From Geosiphon pyriformis uo1 (taxonomy: Eukaryota; Fungi; Glomeromycota): 64,000 nt of DNA. Shown here piece by piece: positions 6,901 through 41,514 of the stretch. The stretch lies in assembly GCA_016748015.1 (NCBI GenBank), contig JAAOMT010000678.1, forward strand, positions 538,389 to 602,388, in the 5' to 3' direction. The notes beneath the pieces are model-generated. The model was not told the DNA's origin. It did not search any database and worked only from the letters and a program-made list of their open reading frames with translations. A program made the position numbers and the translations under genes. Each line of letters begins with the position of its first letter. The first letter of the stretch is position 1.

Positions 6901-8689
6901 TTAAGTAACTAATCACATATAAAAAATACATAATTTTTGCTTAGTTCAGATTACTTAGTTTAATATATTGTGTTAGATAGTATTTGAATCTTACTTATTA
7001 AATAATAATAATAAAAATTAATAATAATACAAAATAATTAATATTATTATTAAATAATTAACAATAATATAAAATAACACAAAATAATTTTTTATTATTT
7101 ATTAAAAAAATAAGATTTAATTGCTATTTCGTATTATATAATATTTAAGTATTTTAAACTAAACACAATTTACATACTTTTTATATATAATTAATTATTT
7201 AGATTATTATAGTATTATTATTTAAACCAGAAAAAAATAAAAAATATTTATGTAATTTAAAACTTATATTAAATGTCTTAATAATATTAAGTAATTATAC
7301 TATACTATTAAATAAAACAACAATAATATTTTTAATAAATAAATATTTAAGACTATAAATTCTTATTAAATATATATAAAAACAATATTTACAATATTAA
7401 TAATAATAAAAAGCATATATTAAACAAAAATTATAACATAAAATAACACAAATTGTAGATTATAATTATTTATAAATTAAACTTAATTTTTTTATTTTTA
7501 AATATTTTATTTATTTATTTTTTAAACCAAAAGCCAAATACAAATTATATAATACTTTTAAAATTATTACTTAAAACAATAATTCTTAAACATAATATTA
7601 CAAAAAATTATTCTTGGTAAATTTGAATATTTATTTTAAATATTATTAAATCTTTAATAATAATTTCTGTTTTTTAATATTAATAAATTATTTGATAATT
7701 CGAAAATTTCTTTAGTAAAATAAAAATTATTATATGTTTTTATGTATTATTATATTATATTTTTTTATTTATAAATTTATATTATTTATACTATATTAAA
7801 TATTTTAATTAATAATTGGCTAATTTATAATTATAATTTTAATCATATTTATGTGTATTTCTTTGTATTATCTAATAATGGTTTTTTGATTTATAAGATT
7901 GTTTATTTTTCTTATATTACATATAATAATTTTTTAAACTAATTTAATTATTTAAAAGTAATATAAAAGTCTTATTCTTAAAAAACAATTTACTAAGTTT
8001 TAATAAAATAGTAGTAATAAGGCCAAAAAATACAAACAATTTTGTTTTTAAACTATTTAAAAATATTTCTAAATCATATTTTGCTTGTTTAAAGAAAATT
8101 ATCTAGACTTAAAACTTGCCATTAAAAGCTATTGAATAAAAAATAAATTTTTTTTTTAATATAAAAATTAGCTTAATAAAAAGTTTTTTTCTTCAAATGT
8201 GTTTTTTTAAAAACTTTTTGGATAAATTAGCAAAAATAATAAAAAAATTACATTTTAATACAAAATAACAAAACTTTTTACAATTTTTACAACAAATTAG
8301 ATCAAATATTATTCATAAAAAATTGATTTTATTAAATATAAAAATAGTACAAAAAGCCCAATTTAAATTTTTTAAAGTTTTAAACAAACAGTAATATATT
8401 TAACTTTAAAATTAATAGTAAATATGCAATTATAATACAAGTTTATTATTAGCTTTTTCTAAAAAATACTAAAATCATGTATAATTGTGTTTATAAACAA
8501 AGTAAACAATAATGTTCTAAACTAATCTTTTAATAATTATATTATCTAATTTTTACTGGCTTTAACCATATATACAAAATTTTTTCTGATTAAAATTAAC
8601 TACTTATATGCTAAAAAATCAGTCTAATTTAATATTAAAAATTTTATTACAAGCTTACTCTTGCACTGAAATTGTTGTTTTCACAGCAG

Positions 8690-10565: not shown

Positions 10566-11288
10566 TTAGAAATTTGAGTCTGTATAAGAAAAAAATTGAA
10601 GGAACTCTGGCTGATGACATGACAGGATATTAGTCATTAAAGAGTCATTCTGGAAGGAAGAAGGTATATATTCATAATTAAAATAGAAATTGCTGTTCTC
10701 TGGCAACGTTGGAACTGAAGATTCTGTTCCTTCTATTTGTGTTTTTACTAATGCATTTTCTTGATTTCGTAATTGCTGTGGTATTTTTTTTGAAATATTG
10801 GAAACAAAATTTTTCCAGGATGCCTTAGCTCGTTTCGGTTTGAATTTGTATGTAGGGTTAATTCTCGAATGTTTAGCTCCAACAGCTTTCGACAAAGTTT
10901 TGTATTGGGCTTTATCCTCTGCAGAAGCTAATTTCCATAACTTTGCTGTAACTCTTGACCAGTAGCGCTGATCTTTTTGGTTTATTCCTTTAATTTTTGC
11001 CTGCATAGTGGCACTTTTTCTGAATAATATGTAACAGTTTGGTGGTCTCTTGGTTTGGCCATCCTTTTCTTTATCAAGGTTCGTAATTTCAAAATTGTAA
11101 AGTTCATCACATGTAAATGGAGCAGGAAACAAATTTAGAATTTCACCAATTTGTTTTATTTCTCTTTCTGGCATATCTAATTGTGACGTGATTGCCTTTG
11201 AGACTCTAGCAAATGAATTATTTGGCTCCAATCGATAAATAGGGTAACATGATTTCACGGAAGATGAATTTTGATTTCGGGTTGTCAT
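10566..11288 (-). CDS. HMG-box transcription factor (MATA_HMG/SOX-TCF type), 240 aa, intronless
   Basis: KRPPNCYILFRK...SRVTAKLWKLASAEDKAQYKTLS...HSRINPTYKFKPKR is a sequence-specific HMG box, followed by a low-complexity C-terminus. Confidence 0.92.
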   Translation of the reverse strand: MTTRNQNSSSVKSCYPIYRLEPNNSFARVSKAITSQLDMPEREIKQIGEILNLFPAPFTCDELYNFEITNLDKEKDGQTKRPPNCYILFRKSATMQAKIKGINQKDQRYWSRVTAKLWKLASAEDKAQYKTLSKAVGAKHSRINPTYKFKPKRAKASWKNFVSNISKKIPQQLRNQENALVKTQIEGTESSVPTLPENSNFYFNYEYIPSSFQNDSLMTNILSCHQPEFLQFFSYTDSNF

Positions 11289-20869: not shown

Positions 20870-21994
20870 ATGATTGAGCTTGACCTCAAAGGTGTGAATG
20901 ATAGTGTTAAGTCAGACCTTAATGGCGTGGACTTATTCGAACTCAACATTAATGAATCTGATTTTTATCATTCACCTAGTGGCTCAAGAGTCAAGAGACC
21001 ACCCAATAGATTTCTAGTTTTTAGAATGAACGTTAAAAATATTGTCCAGGGAAGGAATTTGAGTTGGAATAAACAAATGAGAATAATAACCAGCGTTGCC
21101 TCTCAATATTGGAAGGAGTCTAGTATAGAAAAGAGAAAACCATTTATTGATATCGCGGAAAAAGTTAAAAAACATCACAATAAAAGCTTTCCTAACTACG
21201 CATATAAACCCTTAAAAAAAAAAACGGAATTTAAAGAATACATACCACAAAATACAGTTGATAATTGTACCGATGAAGAAGATGAAAAGGAAACCAAAAA
21301 ATCTGAAACGGAATTAATAAATTTCAAAACCCATATTCCTTCAACATCTCTCACAACAAAGGAAGCTTCTATTTCAAATAATCTAAACACAACACAAATT
21401 TGTACTTCAAACAATCCAAACACAACACCAATCACTCTCCCAATTCCCTTCAATAATGCAAACAACTCAACAAATTTCACTCTTGAAGAAGCCTATCATC
21501 CTATTTCCAATCAAAGCAACTCATATCAGCAAGAAAATCAAAACCAATCTTACTTCACTTCTTCCAACTTCCTTTTAACTAACCCTTATATTCATGGATA
21601 TGACGTTTCAACAACTCCAAAAACTATTTCCCCACAACTATCTCTTAATTTTCCTAGCCAATTTCTCATAAGTCAATTATTTTATAACTCTCAAGAAGGT
21701 TTAATCGATGGTGCAAATTTTTATTCATCAAATGTTTACAATGTTAATCCAGAATTTCAAGAGAATCAAGAATTTTCCCAATTCACCACAAAGTATAGTT
21801 TTCAAAGTCATTTTGTCGATGGTTACCCCTCATGTAATGTAATTGATTTGCCAAATGCAATGCCAAACTCATCCGAAATAACAATGGAATCTCATAATCC
21901 TAATTTTAATTATACCCATGTTGGTTATCCTGGAGAAAGTATAGAAGGGAGTGGGTTCGATATCTCGGATTATTTTGATCCCCTAACCTTTTAA
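20870..21994 (+). CDS. HMG-box transcription factor (MATA_HMG type), 374 aa, intronless
   Basis: KRPPNRFLVFRM...ITSVASQYWKESSIEKRKPFIDIAEKVKKHHNKSFPNYAYKP, then a long S/N/T/Q-rich tail ending in an acidic-aromatic segment (FDISDYFDPLTF). Confidence 0.93.
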   Translation: MIELDLKGVNDSVKSDLNGVDLFELNINESDFYHSPSGSRVKRPPNRFLVFRMNVKNIVQGRNLSWNKQMRIITSVASQYWKESSIEKRKPFIDIAEKVKKHHNKSFPNYAYKPLKKKTEFKEYIPQNTVDNCTDEEDEKETKKSETELINFKTHIPSTSLTTKEASISNNLNTTQICTSNNPNTTPITLPIPFNNANNSTNFTLEEAYHPISNQSNSYQQENQNQSYFTSSNFLLTNPYIHGYDVSTTPKTISPQLSLNFPSQFLISQLFYNSQEGLIDGANFYSSNVYNVNPEFQENQEFSQFTTKYSFQSHFVDGYPSCNVIDLPNAMPNSSEITMESHNPNFNYTHVGYPGESIEGSGFDISDYFDPLTF

Positions 21995-25104: not shown

Positions 25105-25220
25105 ATTATTATTATTATTTCTTATTAATATTTATTATTATTCTTATTATTATTCATTATTATAATTGTTATTATTATTATTCATTATTATTATTATTAT
25201 TCATTATTATTATTATTATA
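25105..25220. repeat. (ATT)n microsatellite
   Basis: Directly visible. Confidence 0.9.
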
Positions 25221-26689
25221 ATATAATATCTGAAGTTTATGTTTCTTTCAACAAGAAAATTGTTGAAAAATGATTTCAAAATCCATTTGAATGAATCAAA
25301 ACTTTAAATGTTGAAGCTTTGAATGTTTCCTGATGATTCTATTCTTTGGCACCATTCCTAAAATAGTCAGTAGCCTTCAAATATGATGTGAACATTTTTT
25401 CATTGGAAAATACATCGGAATTTGCGGACCTCTTGGATAAAGTTTCCTTAAGAATTCTAATAAAAAATTTCCATTTTAAATTATAATATGTATGTTCACA
25501 ATCATCAGTTCAATTTCTGTCAAGTCAATTTTCATGCATATCGTCGGAAAATATTTCTAGAAGGTACGCAAAGAAATTCTTTGTAATCCCAAAGCACGAT
25601 TCTCATCATTCTCATAGAATTTCAAATTTGTGAACTTGAGCTTAGATTCATGGCAATCAAATTGACGATTTTCCATTTTTTATATTGAGTTTTCCATATT
25701 TAAACTTGGTAATCTGGAACGAAAAAAAAGGGTATTTCAAATTCTAAATATTTAACCTCATTTTGTCCAAATAGTTTTATGATTTGAAAATTCAAAAATT
25801 TTTCTAAAAGAATCCTGATCTGTAACCCCTCTTCATACGGGAAACTTAATCTCCAAATATTAATACTACGAATTCTGGAAAGAAAAAACATCATCGAACC
25901 AATAAATAATATCCTTGGTTTTGAATGCTTTTCCTATTATTGGACAACAGATTGTCTTAATATGAAAAGATGATGTCACAATGTTTTTGAAGCAAGGCTA
26001 AATTTGTTCTTCAAGTGGTCGGAAAATGAACTCCAGTATGAATTTTAATAGAAATTGCCTCAAAAAATAATATAGCTTGGCAGACTTTTCAGATCGAGAA
26101 ATTATTTGTGCAGATTACAAATATTTGTTATATTAAACTTTTTAGGCCACGAAAATTATTCAAGTTCATTTTATTAAAATGTATATTGTATTTAAGCCTA
26201 AAATTGATTTTGAAATAATTTTATGATAAAGAAATATATATATTACATATATACTGCATATATTTTTATTTATTATTTGAATTAAATTCTAATAACTTGA
26301 AGATGAAAAAAAAAAGCCTAAACTAAGATGATAAAAAAAAGATTAGATTTATGTGAAACAAAATTTTTTGATATCGGGAAAGGGTTATCAGGGTAATGCC
26401 CATTTTGGAAAAGGTTCTTAAAGCGAGGAAATTTGCCTCAAGTATTAGGAATTTCCGTATCCAGTTTACAAAATTGATTTTCAAATTTGGGCCAGTGTTT
26501 GAACTTTTTTTTACGCAATTGCCATGGAAAAAATGAAATAAGAAAATTAAATTATTTACTCTTTCAAGGGTCAATCTCGTAACAAGGTACTTTATAATAT
26601 GAAAAAAAAACTACAGCTTAAAAAAAAAATTAAAAATTAAACCAAAAACTTATTTCATTGACAGTCTGAAAATCTCTTGGCCAAATAAA

Positions 26690-26985
26690 TAATGATAAGA
26701 AAAGGGTTGACCTTCCTTTTTTTGCAGGCGAGGAATATAATCAAGAATTAGCTGAAAAATACAAAATAATATTATTGACTTTGGAAAAGTAAGAATAGAG
26801 AAAAAAGTTTGTCAAAAATAAAATTTAAAAAATTGTTAATTCCTAATTGTTACTAGTCTACTCATGATACTAGTAAATTGTCCAATCCACTTTATTCTCG
26901 CTTAGATTGTGTTAATATTGATACTCCCAAGCCTAAGGGGTTTTTTTGAGATAAACATTGCTATTGAATATTAATTCCTTCTTAA
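26690..26985 (+). pseudogene. Bacterial-like gene fragment, possibly AAA+ ATPase C-terminal part
   Basis: FLIVTS/THDTSKLSNPLYSRLDCVNIDTPKPKGFF(TGA)DKHCY(TGA)ILIP resembles the AAA sensor-1/Arg-finger segment (IxTtN...lxxPLxSRld) and ends just before the pepP start. Confidence 0.35.
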
Positions 26986-26994
26986 CTTGTTAAT

Positions 26995-28029
26995 ATGATA
27001 AATGATGCTGTGCGAGAAATGTTTCCAAAGAAAAAATTTAGATGCTATGCTTTTTTTCCCCCTTGAAAATCGCTTTTGACTAACTGGTTATCGCTCAAAT
27101 TTAGGTTATTAAATCATTACTCCCCGGACTAAATACCTTTTTGTTGATGGTCGTTATATTACTGATGGCTAAAAAAATTTAGCAGGCAAGGGCATAGAAG
27201 TTTGTTTATGGAAAAATTGAGAGAGATAAAAAATTTCTTAAAAGAAGAGAAGATTAAGAATATAGGGTCTGAAAAAGATTATATAACAGTCGCATAACTG
27301 GAAAAATGAAAAAAGAGATGCTTACTGTTAGTTTAATATGAATAGAAACCAATAAAATGCGAATAATAAAAAATAGTCAAAGTAATCGAATGTGTTCGCC
27401 AAGCGGGAAAATCACTGACCAAACTTTTCAAAAATTATACGAACAGCAAAAGCTAGTATTAAAAAAAAAATATTGCCACAACTATATTAAACACCATGAA
27501 AGAGTTAGGAGCCGAAGAATTATCATTCGATACTATTGTAATTTCTGGCATAAGGGGAAGTTTGCCCTAAGAGCCCCTAGCAAAAAATTATTCAATTGGT
27601 GAACTAGTTACCATTAATTTTGGCAGTAAAATATGAAAGTTATTGTTCAGATTTTATTCGTGCTTTTTGCTTTGAGTAAATTAGTTAATACCTCAACTTG
27701 TCCAAATCTATCAAATATTTCGTGAAGCTCAATGAAAAGGTATTCAAACCTTAGAGTCCGGAATAAAATCTAGTGAAATTGACCGAATTTTACAGAGTTA
27801 TATTCAAGAAAAAGCTATGGAGAATTTTTTAATCATTCAACTGGCCATGGATTAGGTATTGAAGTTCACGAAGCTCCTTGGGATTCGAGTCATGATAACA
27901 CAATATTACAAACCAGAATGAATTTATATTCCTAATTTTGGAGGAGTAAGAATTGAGGACGACATTTTAGTTAAAGAAGATGGCTATGAAATGCTTGCTA
28001 ACTCTCCCCACGATTTAATTTATGTATAA
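26995..28029 (+). pseudogene. pepP: Bacterial Xaa-Pro aminopeptidase (M24B, creatinase-N + peptidase M24) pseudogene
   Basis: Across frameshifts/stops: NLDAMLFFPLENRF(TGA)LTGYRSNLGY*IITPRTKYLFVDGRYI; MKELGAEELSFDTIVISGIRGSLP; GELVTINFG..YCSD; YGEFFNHSTGHGLGIEVHEAP (GHGLG at 27843); YIPNFGGVRIEDDILVKEDGYEMLANSPHDLIYV*. No introns. Confidence 0.92.
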
Positions 28030-28186
28030 AGCAAATAATAATACTCACTCAAAAAATAATCGTGAAGGTAAAAGAATGTCAACTGAAATGAAAGTTTTTT
28101 TTAGCAATAGTAAGAGTAAAAATATTATTCGCTGTTGGTATTATGTTGGAGGAATTTCTAAAAAACTAAGAAATAAAGAATAATAT

Positions 28187-29002
28187 ATGGCCACAAACAA
28201 AATAAATAAAATTTAAATTTAATAATTGGCCATCACTGCCTAGTAAAATCTCTTAGCTTCCTACCGGGAGCAGTCCGGGAAGCGCTAAGTTATGATGTTA
28301 ATACTCAATGATTTATAGTGGGGCACCGCAAAATAGTTTTCGCCGACCCTTAACAGATTTAAAAATAGCAGAATTTAAAAAAAATTCTCATAGAAACAAT
28401 ATTGGCATTAATAAAGTAGTTGTCAGTAGTCCTTATCTATTGAATTATGGTGGCGTAGTGCATGAGAAGATTTTTCAATGGTAGTAAAATTTTTAAAAAA
28501 AGACATGACACGTGTGGAGGGAATCAATTTAAAAATTATTGTAGTGCACTGAATGCTCAATCACAAAATGTCTTATCACAAGTAGCCAAAGGACTCAATT
28601 CTTCCCTTAAAGAAATTACACGATTTGTATTGCTTTGGAAACAATGTATAGAAGAGTAGTAGAGGTCGGAGGAAGTTTCTAGCAACTCAGATACATAATA
28701 GATAAAGTCGAACAAAAACCAAAAGTAGAGATATGTTGAGATACTTGTCATCTTTATGCACTGGTTATGATATTAAAAACAATTTAGAAGGAGTAATTAA
28801 AGAATTTGAGGGAAAGATTGGTTTAGATAAAATTTTGAGTTATTCATGTTAATGATTCATTTGTTGATTTCAAAATATTAGACATGAAAAAGTTGGTAAA
28901 TTCAATGGCATATTCAAACTACTGGAAACCACTCAGAATAATGAGAGTTATCGCGAAGAAATAAAAATGGTAATAATATTAGATATAAAAATTATGAATT
29001 AA
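28187..29002 (+). pseudogene. nfo: Bacterial endonuclease IV (AP endonuclease family 2) pseudogene
   Basis: LIIGHHC...GAVREALSYDVNT/MIYSGAPQNSFRRPL...NNIGINKVVVSSPYLLN; IALETMYRRVVEVGGSF*QLRYIIDKVEQKPKVEIC(TGA)DTCHLYA; GYDIKNNLEGVIKEFEGKIGLDKI/VIHVNDS..RHEKVG; FNGIFKLLET..YREEIKM. These are Firmicutes/Mollicutes-type Nfo motifs. Confidence 0.92.
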
Positions 29003-30786
29003 GAAAATCAAAAAAATATTTGAAGCAAGAAATGATGGTTTCTTTAACTATAGGTAATAATGGTAATTTTAAAGTAATATTAGAAATATTTTATAGTGCA
29101 AGTGAAGCAAGGCTTCAATGATTTCTTAAAGTTCCTGTGAAAACTAATGGGAAATTTGGGCATTAGGAAGTAGAATGGGGCAAACTCATCATATTTTATA
29201 TAAGATTGAGAACTTTATTTATTCACATCTTTTATTGTTAATAAGTACCAAATATTAAAAACCATATTACTAACACTTTTTGGGTTGAATAAGTATTTAA
29301 ATCTAAATAAAGGTAAAGAATCAAATACAATCAGTGGCAAAATTTGCAATTATCATAAAGCATTTGAGACATGCAATTCTTCTTTTAAGAGAAAATCATA
29401 ATAATGTACTGGTTCCTACTCCTACTCTCTTTCTAACTCAAACTCATATTCCAACTGATTAAATTAAGATGATAATATTAATATATTGGAATAATTGCTG
29501 TAGAAATTCTTGCAATTAGTTTAGAAAATTCAATAATTTTTCAAAAAGGAAGAGAGTTGAGGTTAACTTTCAATCATCAATAGAAGACCGAAGTCTTCCC
29601 TAAGATTGTCCCGAATTATTTTGCTAAAAGGATTGCAATTCCTATCAAAGAAAATTTCCAAGAAAACAAAAAAAATTAGTAAAAGTGAAAGAAACAGAGA
29701 ACCTAATCCTAATTTTGCTTTCAGAACTCAAGAGCTTTTACCAAACGAAACTCTTGAACCATTACTGGCTCAGATTTACTAGTGGATAATCATAATTGGA
29801 AAGCTCTCATTAATAATTGTCCTGATCAAAGATTAACAAGCCAGAATCTCCGCTAACATTTGTGGTAAAAGAAGAGAAAAGACACTTAGGGCTAGCTTAG
29901 TTGGGTTTTAGAAAATGCGGAAAAAGAAAATTAGGACGCCGTAAAAGATATTTTTGTGGAAGTAGAAAAATCATGAGCAAGATGTTTATCATTTACTTAG
30001 TGATAAAATAGACGCTATCATATCTAGTTAGTGTTCAATACAAAAATTTGAAAATTAAAAGTTTATAACAAAGCAATATTAATTAATATTTACAAATATT
30101 AGTTAATAGTTTACCAAAATGCAAAAAATTAACAATTTTTAGCAAGCCCAACTTAACTATATTCAAACTAGACTTTTTTATATTCAAGTAAAATATATTC
30201 TGTAGAAACTTTAAAATTTTCAGTTCATCTTTTTCAAATATTTGTACTATGTTTTTCTATTCAAAAACAATTTTTTTTTACTAAATGCATAATCTTTAAA
30301 TAACTTTAAATTCCTACACAATTTAATTACACTTTTATTTATACAAGTTTTTGCCATTTTTTCTTGGTGCTAAGAGAAAAAAGTAGCCTTTTACCCATTT
30401 TTTAAAATAAAAAAATATGAATCTTTTGTCTTATGTTTTAAAAATTTATTAGCAATAATAAAACATAAAGTAAGAAAAATATCAATAATATTTAAATAAA
30501 ATAAAATTAATTAATTATAGTTAAAAAAAAACTTGATACATATAACAGTAATTAAATTTTTCTTGGAATTATATGATAAAAAGATATTAATCTCAATATT
30601 GATAATTTTTTCACAATTTTTTAAGCCAAAGTTTAAAAATATAAAAAGAAAATTATAACTTTTTTATTATTAGTTTTAATGATGAAACTATAAAACATTA
30701 TATACTTTAGAAAATAGATTCTTTATAAGATCATGTGAAATATTTTTGATTTATTAGTTCAAAGACAGTTTTTATTTTTTGTCTTA

Positions 30787-31728
30787 ATGCAATTACAAAT
30801 AGAAGTGGTAGACCTTCTTTTCTTAATAAAAAAAACTACTAAAATATTACAAAAAACAATTAAGAAGAATCCAAAAAGTACTCTCAAAGAAATTCAAGAA
30901 GATTTCAATAAGAAAAATCTTAAAGTTTCAACAAAAACTATCAGTACTTCCTTACACAAGATTAGTCTTTACTCAAGAATTGCTGCAAAGAAACCATTAT
31001 TAACTCAAATCCAACAAGAAAATCGACTTAATTGGTGTATTAAACGTTCTTTTTGGACAATTAAAAAATGGAATGAAGTTATTTGGAGTGATTAATCAAG
31101 ATTTTGTCTTTTTTCTGATGGACCTCAAAAAGTATGGAGAGAAAAAGGAACAAGATTTAACAAAGAAAATTTATCACCAACTGTAAAGCATGGTGAAGGA
31201 GGAATTATGGTTTGGGGATATTTTTGTGGAACTGGATTAGGTCCTTTAGTTTTAGTAGAAGGCATATTAAATCGGTTTGGATATATTGATCTTTTACAAA
31301 AACATTTATTATCATAGATTAATTATAAATTTTATCATAAACATTATTTATTTCAACAAGATAATGCCCCAATTCATACAGCTAAAGATGTTAAGACTTG
31401 GATGGCTCAAAACATCTCAATTTACTTTCTAAATGGCCACCACAATCACCCGATTTGAATCCAATAGAGCATTTATGGGATTATTTACAAAAACAACTCA
31501 AAAAATGAAATCCGCGCCCCGAAAATAATCACAAATTATTTCTCGCGTTACAAGAAGAATGGCAAACAATTTCACGAAATATCTATATAAATTTGGTTAC
31601 TAGTGTATCTAGACGTATTGAAGAATGTATTAGAAAGGAGGGTAGACCAACTAGTTATTAAGTATTAAATAAAATAAAAAGTTATTAAAGAAATAATAAA
31701 TTGTCCCATGATTTTTTTCCGCCGAGTG
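30787..31728 (+). mobile_element. Tc1/mariner (DD34E-like) transposon relic, 5'-eroded, with right terminal repeat
   Basis: RSGRP; SRIAAKKPLL; WNEVIWSD*SRFCL; TVKHGEGGIMVWG; FQQDNAPIHTAK; WPPQSPDLNPIEHLW; stop at 31659-31661; putative TIR ttgtcccatgatttttttccgccgagtg followed by TA (31729-31730). Left TIR not found. Confidence 0.92.
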
Positions 31729-40497: not shown

Positions 40498-41514
40498 ATG
40501 GGAAAAGAAAACAAGAACGTTTTTGAAATGGCAAACGTTGTTAAGAAATCAATTGCTTCTCCATATTCACGTAGAAAATCAACAGCAACAGATGGTAACA
40601 AGAAAAGTCGGTCCAAGATAGAAAAGAAACGCATTAGCAGTGAGATTCCAGCAAGTTTTGACCCCAAAATTGTATACAAACCTCGTTTTGATCTTCAAAC
40701 ACTTATATGCACTACAAAAAAACCACCATCCCTTGGTAAACCACCACGTCCTGCAAATAGTTTCTTTCTTTTAAAAAATTGCTTGTTGAAGGAGATGTGG
40801 AGCTTTGGGTTAAAACCGACCATGCCAATGGTTTGTCAACTTGCTAAAAAAGTTTGGCAAGATGCCCCAAATGAGGTGAAAAAACTATATGATGACTTAT
40901 CAACAGAAGCTCTAAAGTTACATCATTCCCTTTATCCAAATTACAAGTATCAACCTAAAAGATCCTCAGTTTATGTTTCAAATTCTTTCCCGGAGGGCAA
41001 CTCCGCCGGTATGATGACAACTTTTAGTATTAATCAATCATATCCCATATCAAATTTTATGATCACTAACACCAACAACAACAACAACAATAACGACAAA
41101 AATGAAGAAGAAAAAGAAGAAGAAGAAGAAGAAAAAGAAGAAGAAGAAGAAAAAGAAGAAGAAGAAGAAGAAGAAGAAGCCTTTACTTCACCAATACAGT
41201 CTGGATATGAAAATTCTGCCTTGTCTCCTGATTCAGATGTAACAACTTCATCTTTATCATCGGAAAATGCTTCACCAATTTATCAAAATTTCGAAGAGTT
41301 TTCAACTCAACAACTTTCAGAAGAAAATACAATTTACCATACAGTTCCGTGCTTTGTCTTTCCCTTAGATTATTTCACTGAAAATGATATTTATGAAGAA
41401 TTATTAATAACAGATGGTACATTTTTCCCATTCGATCAGTTTGAATTGTTTCCACAAATAGGAACATCACACAGCTTACTCCTTGAGCAACACATTACGG
41501 CCCTTTCTTTTTGA
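40498..41514 (+). CDS. HMG-box transcription factor (MATA_HMG type) with poly-N and poly-E tracts, 338 aa, intronless
   Basis: PPRPANSFFLLKN...MPMVCQLAKKVWQDAPNEVKKLYDDLSTEALKLHHSLYPNYKYQPKR; basic NLS-like N-terminus; (GAA)n-encoded acidic tract at 41104-41178. Confidence 0.93.
   Translation: MGKENKNVFEMANVVKKSIASPYSRRKSTATDGNKKSRSKIEKKRISSEIPASFDPKIVYKPRFDLQTLICTTKKPPSLGKPPRPANSFFLLKNCLLKEMWSFGLKPTMPMVCQLAKKVWQDAPNEVKKLYDDLSTEALKLHHSLYPNYKYQPKRSSVYVSNSFPEGNSAGMMTTFSINQSYPISNFMITNTNNNNNNNDKNEEEKEEEEEEKEEEEEKEEEEEEEEAFTSPIQSGYENSALSPDSDVTTSSLSSENASPIYQNFEEFSTQQLSEENTIYHTVPCFVFPLDYFTENDIYEELLITDGTFFPFDQFELFPQIGTSHSLLLEQHITALSF

Follow-up and report, generated by a model that had tools for sequence, protein, structure and literature searches.

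The locus considered here raises the question of how remains of bacterial genes came to lie in a chromosome of the fungus Geosiphon pyriformis, and from which bacterium they were derived. It was found in a window of 64,000 nucleotides (nt), the whole stretch of DNA that was analysed, in which a preliminary description had noticed a decaying, multi-gene bacterial segment with an AAA-like gene, pepP and nfo. Very probably at least 2.26 kb of chromosomal DNA from a Mollicutes-related endobacterium (MRE) became integrated into the nuclear genome of this glomeromycotan host with its genes in bacterial order, and has since decayed.

A six-frame Pfam search, reading through stops, was run over the whole genome (128 Mb in 792 contigs, AT-rich). 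It detected remains of a bacterial-type M24B peptidase and of an endonuclease IV in the window, both on the plus strand. Other genomic matches to these families (PF00557 and PF01261) lie on other contigs, in exon-sized pieces with no or few internal stops, which is what the fungus's own intron-bearing genes should look like. Altogether, four co-oriented, intronless and broken genes occupy 26716-28972 (+): an AAA-like gene, pepP, the relic of a small membrane-protein gene, and nfo. The co-oriented and intronless peptidase and endonuclease pseudogenes that had been proposed from the bare sequence were confirmed both by the Pfam matches through stops and by frameshift-aware alignments, in which relatives were aligned to the window DNA by a dynamic programme with TGA read as tryptophan (Trp).

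The pepP pseudogene (M24B Xaa-Pro aminopeptidase; 27005-28029, +) is full length, and was recognised by Pfam, frameshift-aware alignment and tree. It runs from 27005 to 28026, followed by a TAA, and spans residues 1-349 of P0154, a protein of 349 amino acids (aa), with 56.9% identity. The Peptidase_M24 domain (PF00557) is matched over its full length (1-208) at 27388-27978, through four TGA, three TAG and two TAA, and the combination of Creatinase_N and Peptidase_M24, carried by the relatives as PF01321 and PF00557, can be followed over the full length. An intact reading frame for a PepP enzyme was not found, as 8 frameshifts, four in-frame TAA (at 27110, 27170, 27295 and 27568) and six in-frame TGA interrupt it, and the window pepP is a pseudogene derived from the M24B family. 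The in-frame stops of pepP are all TAA, and at 27170 and 27295 the relatives have glutamine. Four of the six TGA codons (27077, 27218, 27307 and 27733) stand where all close relatives have Trp, and a fifth (27339) where two relatives have it.

The nfo pseudogene (endonuclease IV; 28206-28972, +) was recognised by the same three approaches. The AP_endonuc_2 domain (PF01261) is matched at 28617-28865 through six internal stops, and alignment with P0298 gives 68.8% identity with 8 frameshifts and one stop (TAG at 28680). Both TGA codons (28737 and 28836) fall on conserved Trp, in the motifs CWDTCH and LWVIHVNDS. Near the C-terminus a deletion has removed approximately 20-25 codons, including the DRHENIG stretch. 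Homology is clear although neither an intact frame nor the C-terminal metal-site region of an endonuclease IV is present, and the window nfo is a pseudogene derived from the Nfo family. It matches all five DhMRE-family genomes at 66-74% nt identity, and its protein identity to the sequenced MRE genomes is 49-53%. The fungus's own Apn1-like gene is separate (contig C701) and its last exon is 40-46% identical to MRE Nfo; a grouping of the window genes with fungal Apn1 or M24 proteins, which would have pointed to a host origin, was not seen. Another PF01261 match, on contig C418, turned out to be a distant TIM-barrel gene and not an MRE nfo.

Two blocks are left of the AAA-like, membrane-anchored MRE gene (26716-27000, +), identified by blastn and tblastx against MRE-type contigs; the intact gene has 201-212 aa, and about 176 nt between the blocks have been deleted. 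With blastn the blocks match the metagenome contig L162 (L162:844-982 at 74% and L162:1159-1298 at 72%), and with tblastx the remains also match L096, L097 and L104-L113, while 26718-26781 matches the DhMRE genome at 82% nt identity. The stops are TAG at 26854 and TAA at 26983, and a TGA at 26947 represents the Trp of an FFWDKY motif. The label AAA-like given in the preliminary description is fair, because an intact homologue (L097:2813-3217) just passes the Pfam cut-off for AAA (PF00004; 22.3 bits, cut-off 21.2). It holds for 26716-27000, but no AAA ATPase remnant precedes 26716: the candidate at 25600-26720 scored 97-117, within the range of other fungal regions and shuffled proteins. Between pepP and nfo, 28049-28183 (+) may be the C-terminal membrane-helix relic of a small zinc-ribbon/transmembrane gene. 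One unbroken blastn block (28069-28856 against L162:2665-3476) passes through this relic, and its protein alignment with a 159-aa gene of contig L100 scored 56 compared to a shuffled maximum of 55.

The order of these genes can be compared to that of bacterial contigs. L162 is a 5.1-kb metagenome contig using genetic code 4, and it carries an AAA ATPase, a 212-aa AAA-like gene, pepP, about 310 nt, nfo, a leucine-rich repeat (LRR) gene and argS. Window positions 26716-28972 are collinear with L162:844-3647 at 66-74% nt identity. In L100 the order is pepP, the 159-aa gene and nfo; the pair of AAA-like gene followed by pepP occurs in L096 and L097, and the AAA-like gene stands directly before nfo in L104-L113. 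The arrangement of the window is matched by the metagenome contigs L162 and L100 only, the former having the full order and the latter pepP, small gene and nfo, so that the proposed pepP-nfo neighbourhood was indeed found in MRE-type DNA. This shows the gene order of the insert to be the bacterial order of its donor. The gene on the 3' side of nfo is a different one in almost all of the MRE-type contigs L101, L103, L104, L108-L113, L161 and L162, being an LRR gene, recA, HIT, cysS or minus-strand genes, while the AAA-like gene before nfo is mostly retained. Such variable nfo neighbours fit the reported plasticity of MRE genomes.

The genetic code and the phylogeny both bear on the identity of the donor. 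L100 and L162, as live relatives, have the same TGA codons, so those of the window were inherited as code-4 Trp codons and did not arise by decay. This agrees with the expectation of code 4, TGA falling on conserved Trp in 4-5 of 6 cases in pepP and in both cases in nfo. In a maximum-likelihood tree, the window Nfo is nested in a 47-row MRE clade, apart from Spiroplasma and Bacilli, with a Shimodaira-Hasegawa-like approximate likelihood ratio test (SH-aLRT) value of 100. The members of this clade include GvMRE, DhMRE, Ca. Moeniiplasma, RC_NB112A and CE_OT135. The window PepP falls in a 12-row clade inside the Mollicutes (SH-aLRT 100), which includes L096, L097, L099, L100 and a copy from the Funneliformis geosporum assembly. 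The named relatives of the Nfo of L100 are DhMRE (80%), Ca. Moeniiplasma glomeromycotorum (73%), GvMRE and the RC_NB112A and CE_OT135 endobacteria. Among 1.84 billion representative proteins scanned with a 50-aa catalytic PepP piece, P0001 was the best match, and the full-length comparison ranked P0001 first and Spiroplasma eriocheiris next. The homologues of P0001 form a clade at 64-77% identity to it, followed by Spiroplasma, Mycoplasma and Entomoplasma at about 50%; compared to the window copy, Spiroplasma and Mycoplasma PepP reach no more than about 45% identity. The same 50-aa piece compared to species genomes gave unspecific bacteria only and pointed to no donor. Taken with the code, the two MRE-tied clades show the putative donor to be an MRE of the Ca. 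Moeniiplasma type using genetic code 4, as had been suggested before the phylogeny of the reconstructed PepP and Nfo was available.

The presence of pepP differs among the endobacteria. No pepP orthologue was found in the five DhMRE-family genomes (G001-G005), where the sole match is about 30% identical, and all five have nfo and the AAA-like gene. Nor did 401 genomes sampled from the order contain a PepP more than 52% identical to P0154. In MRE-type DNA, pepP is seen in the metagenome contigs L096, L097, L099, L100, L161 and L162 and not in the DhMRE family, a pattern implying that gene content differs among MRE lineages. Genes of MRE type are also annotated as fungal in several assemblies, namely PepP/Nfo in those of Funneliformis geosporum, Gigaspora margarita, Cetraspora pellucida and Entrophospora sp., and Nfo further in those of Racocetra persica and Ambispora leptoticha (P0003, P0287, P0301, P0347, P0363 and P0365). 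Some of them are on contigs of 19-72 kb, and one carries an Abhydrolase_2 domain as a fusion.

The substitutions in the window copy indicate decay without selection. Changes were assigned by parsimony either to the window branch or to the branch of the live sister and counted per codon position. For nfo, 86 of 744 sites changed on the window branch (24, 31 and 31 at codon positions 1, 2 and 3), compared to 24 changes in the live sister (6, 2 and 16). For pepP, the window branch has 143 changes in 990 sites (52, 50 and 41) and the live sister 48 (10, 11 and 27). Because the spread over codon positions is flat, most of the window branch was probably travelled without selection. Together pepP and nfo have 16 frameshifts in 1.8 kb and 5 in-frame stops. 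A copy so heavily broken and without constraint on codon position agrees with the earlier view of decay rather than of a live contaminant. Lineage-specific substitutions amount to approximately 0.12-0.14 per site and are even over the codon positions, which points to an old insertion rather than a recent one. Among the lineage-specific changes, those from C to T or from G to A, the signal expected of repeat-induced point mutation, showed no clear excess.

On both sides the stretch passes without a break into host DNA. Among public runs, only run X1 contains it, with 97% of the words sampled from 25500-31000 present. The contigs of X1 are de Bruijn contigs assembled independently of the genome assembly; one covers 25206-27260 at a depth of 72 and another 27231-30713 at a depth of 81, both with 0 mismatches and 0 gaps. 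With these contigs both junctions (26716 and 30020) are crossed at the depth of the flanks, and the second contig continues into a high-copy mariner repeat. The contiguity with fungal DNA between HMG genes that had been described was thus upheld. In the 128-Mb genome, 26600-30100 matches itself alone and is single-copy at both the DNA and the protein level, and the genome-wide six-frame PF01261 search revealed no second MRE-type nfo, intact or broken, in the assembly. Around the stretch there are no convincing inverted repeats, only weak AT-rich ones, and neither a long code-4 open frame nor a transposase was found within 5 kb of it.

The surroundings are fungal in character. HMG-box open frames are present at 10566-11288 (-), 20870-21994 (+) and 40498-41514 (+), forming a local cluster of three within 31 kb, and the assembly contig that carries them together with the mariner relic and the bacterial stretch extends over more than 600 kb. 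The relic is a Tc1/mariner transposase in the standard code at 30787-31508 (+), with the domains HTH_Tnp_Tc3_2 (PF01498, E 5e-17) and DDE_3 (PF13358, E 1e-7). It begins about 770 bp past the end of the 28973-30020 segment discussed below and is context outside the insert. At 30787-31508 the depth in the X1 contig climbs from about 81 to values of about 1000-1500, so that the family of the relic is highly repeated. Further away, a 1-kb tract at 7001-8000 has a guanine plus cytosine (GC) content of just 9.4%, its neighbours having 22-24%.

The extent of the bacterial segment had been given as about 3.3 kb (26690-30000). Of this, 26716-28972 (2.26 kb) is bacterial, while 28973-30000 has no detectable relative. 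This tail, taken to 30020, is about 1 kb of single-copy sequence of about 29% GC with no assigned donor. It is purine-rich on the plus strand, with GC and purine skew like the preceding bacterial part, and ends at a sharp fall of GC to 14-20%. It may be the remnant of a donor-specific gene or host DNA. Ten pieces of the tail gave no Pfam match, 300 kb of MRE loci no tblastx match, four protein pieces no match in five MRE genomes, and tRNA and Rfam scans returned nothing. A 71-aa piece (29567-29779) had no relative in a search of 5.8 billion proteins, and its weak matches within the fungal genome (C136 and C371) turned out to be noise. Several candidate identities were rejected: a six-frame PF00497 search gave no match for SBP_bac_3, and scores for the HIT, RecA, LRR or arginyl-tRNA synthetase (ArgRS) genes of MRE-type contigs were within the null range. 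The same was true of the three minus-strand genes 3' of nfo in L161 and of a 263-aa L161 gene, with one marginal exception. The 29485-29765 segment scored 79 with a 115-aa L161 protein, the highest of 25 shuffles being 71, and this is not significant once about 12 tests are allowed for. That protein is encoded at L161:3591-3938 on the minus strand, adjoining a gene of the HVO_A0114 family. Codon-usage frame tracking and a 5-mer Markov classifier were too weak to fix the boundaries.

Other explanations for the locus have to be weighed against insertion of an endobacterial chromosome fragment. The unexplained tail leaves some room for the genes having travelled as passengers on a code-4 cut-and-paste transposon, of which the tail would be the decayed remainder; a small gene in an MRE-type contig also matches 29485-29765, weakly and before correction (score 79, null maximum 71). 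Nevertheless, we consider this improbable, as the stretch is single-copy in DNA and protein and has neither convincing inverted repeats around it nor a long code-4 frame or transposase within 5 kb; the sole transposase nearby is the standard-code mariner relic outside the stretch, and the genes are housekeeping chromosomal genes ordered as in the bacterial contig L162. It is highly improbable that the assembly joined fungal sequence by mistake to DNA of a live endobacterium, or to a part of its genome that is rich in pseudogenes. MRE contigs occur commonly among the published assemblies of Glomeromycotina, and pseudogenes abound in MRE genomes (PMC11423566); together with the MRE genes listed as fungal in several assemblies, this makes such an artefact conceivable. 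However, both junctions are crossed without mismatch and at flank depth by independent de Bruijn contigs, of which the 3' one runs on into a high-copy fungal repeat. By the six-frame PF01261 search the assembly contains no second MRE-type nfo, its other matches being the fungal Apn1-like gene and a distant TIM-barrel gene, and the 16 frameshifts in 1.8 kb and the substitutions spread flat over the codon positions also speak against an artefact.

That the donor was some other code-4 mollicute related to Spiroplasma or Mycoplasma, or another bacterium altogether, and not a fungal endobacterium, seems extremely improbable to us. It could be argued from the lack of a pepP orthologue in the five DhMRE-family genomes and from the metagenome origin of the closest PepP and Nfo sequences. 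Yet the window Nfo lies within a clade of named MREs, and the PepP clade holds both L100, where the neighbouring Nfo shares 80% identity with that of DhMRE, and the copy from the Funneliformis geosporum assembly, while PepP of Spiroplasma and Mycoplasma is at most about 45% identical to the window copy. Certain points do weigh against the reading as an endobacterial insert. The 3' kilobase is unexplained, and the nearest relatives have just 57-69% protein identity, suggesting that the true donor lineage is unsampled; if so, the time since insertion is not cleanly separable from the divergence of the donor. The X1 data are contigs and not raw long reads, and probably come from the same sample as the assembly, so that another assembler was applied to the same specimen. 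A further suggestion, which we regard as rather unlikely, is that the insert is an old fossil of a pepP-carrying MRE lineage outside the sequenced endobacterial genomes, the tail of which would preserve a gene of this lost lineage. On this view, an orthologous insertion shared by other Glomeromycotina would set a minimum date for the association with endobacteria and bear on the debate of early versus late invasion.

If an MRE chromosome fragment was inserted as we propose, DNA from a lysed endobacterium could have been captured during repair of a chromosome break, as with nuclear copies of mitochondrial DNA (NUMTs) and Wolbachia nuclear inserts. The piece would have carried the end of the AAA-like gene, pepP, the small membrane-protein gene and nfo. 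The transferred genes would lack eukaryotic expression signals, and as TGA at Trp codons (the first at about codon 25 of pepP) would in addition be read as stop, no full-length protein would be made in the fungus and the piece would drift neutrally.

Transfer from MRE to fungus as such is already known. In Diversispora epigaea, single genes have been transferred in this direction, encoding RNase III, Uma2 and HNH endonucleases and a methyltransferase, and were taken to be retained and useful, going by the account of Sun et al. (2019, New Phytol 221:1556) in PMC8227670. As far as that account goes, the donor group and the direction into a glomeromycotan nucleus are the same as here, but the genes of D. 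epigaea are single and thought functional, whereas the window holds a contiguous four-gene housekeeping piece that is in bacterial order, decayed and unreadable in the host code. What is new is therefore a contiguous, dead, multi-gene fragment of an MRE chromosome. Other MRE papers have described host-to-MRE transfer, or whole MRE contigs inside fungal assemblies. With the MRE genomes (Ca. Moeniiplasma glomeromycotorum, DhMRE, GvMRE, RC_NB112A and CE_OT135) the window shares TGA as Trp and an AAA-like gene upstream of nfo, and the GC of 30-36% of those genomes is a further likeness; unlike the DhMRE-family genomes, the window has pepP, and its copy is dead.

Nuclear inserts of Wolbachia in arthropods and nematodes, like NUMTs and the corresponding plastid inserts (NUPTs), keep the gene order of the donor, are mostly non-functional and decay neutrally. 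The insert described here resembles Wolbachia inserts and NUMTs in nesting in an endosymbiont lineage, in being continuous with host DNA and in keeping the donor gene order. In contrast, its host is a fungus and its donor has another genetic code, so that it was untranslatable from the start, and the comparison rests on one short fragment.

These results provide physical evidence that chromosomal MRE DNA enters and persists in nuclei of mycorrhiza-type fungi, in the direction that is less described in published MRE work. As the piece was unreadable on arrival, it can serve as a neutral marker of the donor lineage and its gene order, and it could be used to gauge neutral mutation in a fungus without known sex or close sequenced relatives. 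Standard open reading frame calling misses such stretches, which is a warning for annotation, and the same test should be applied to the bacterial genes that several glomeromycotan assemblies list as fungal proteins.

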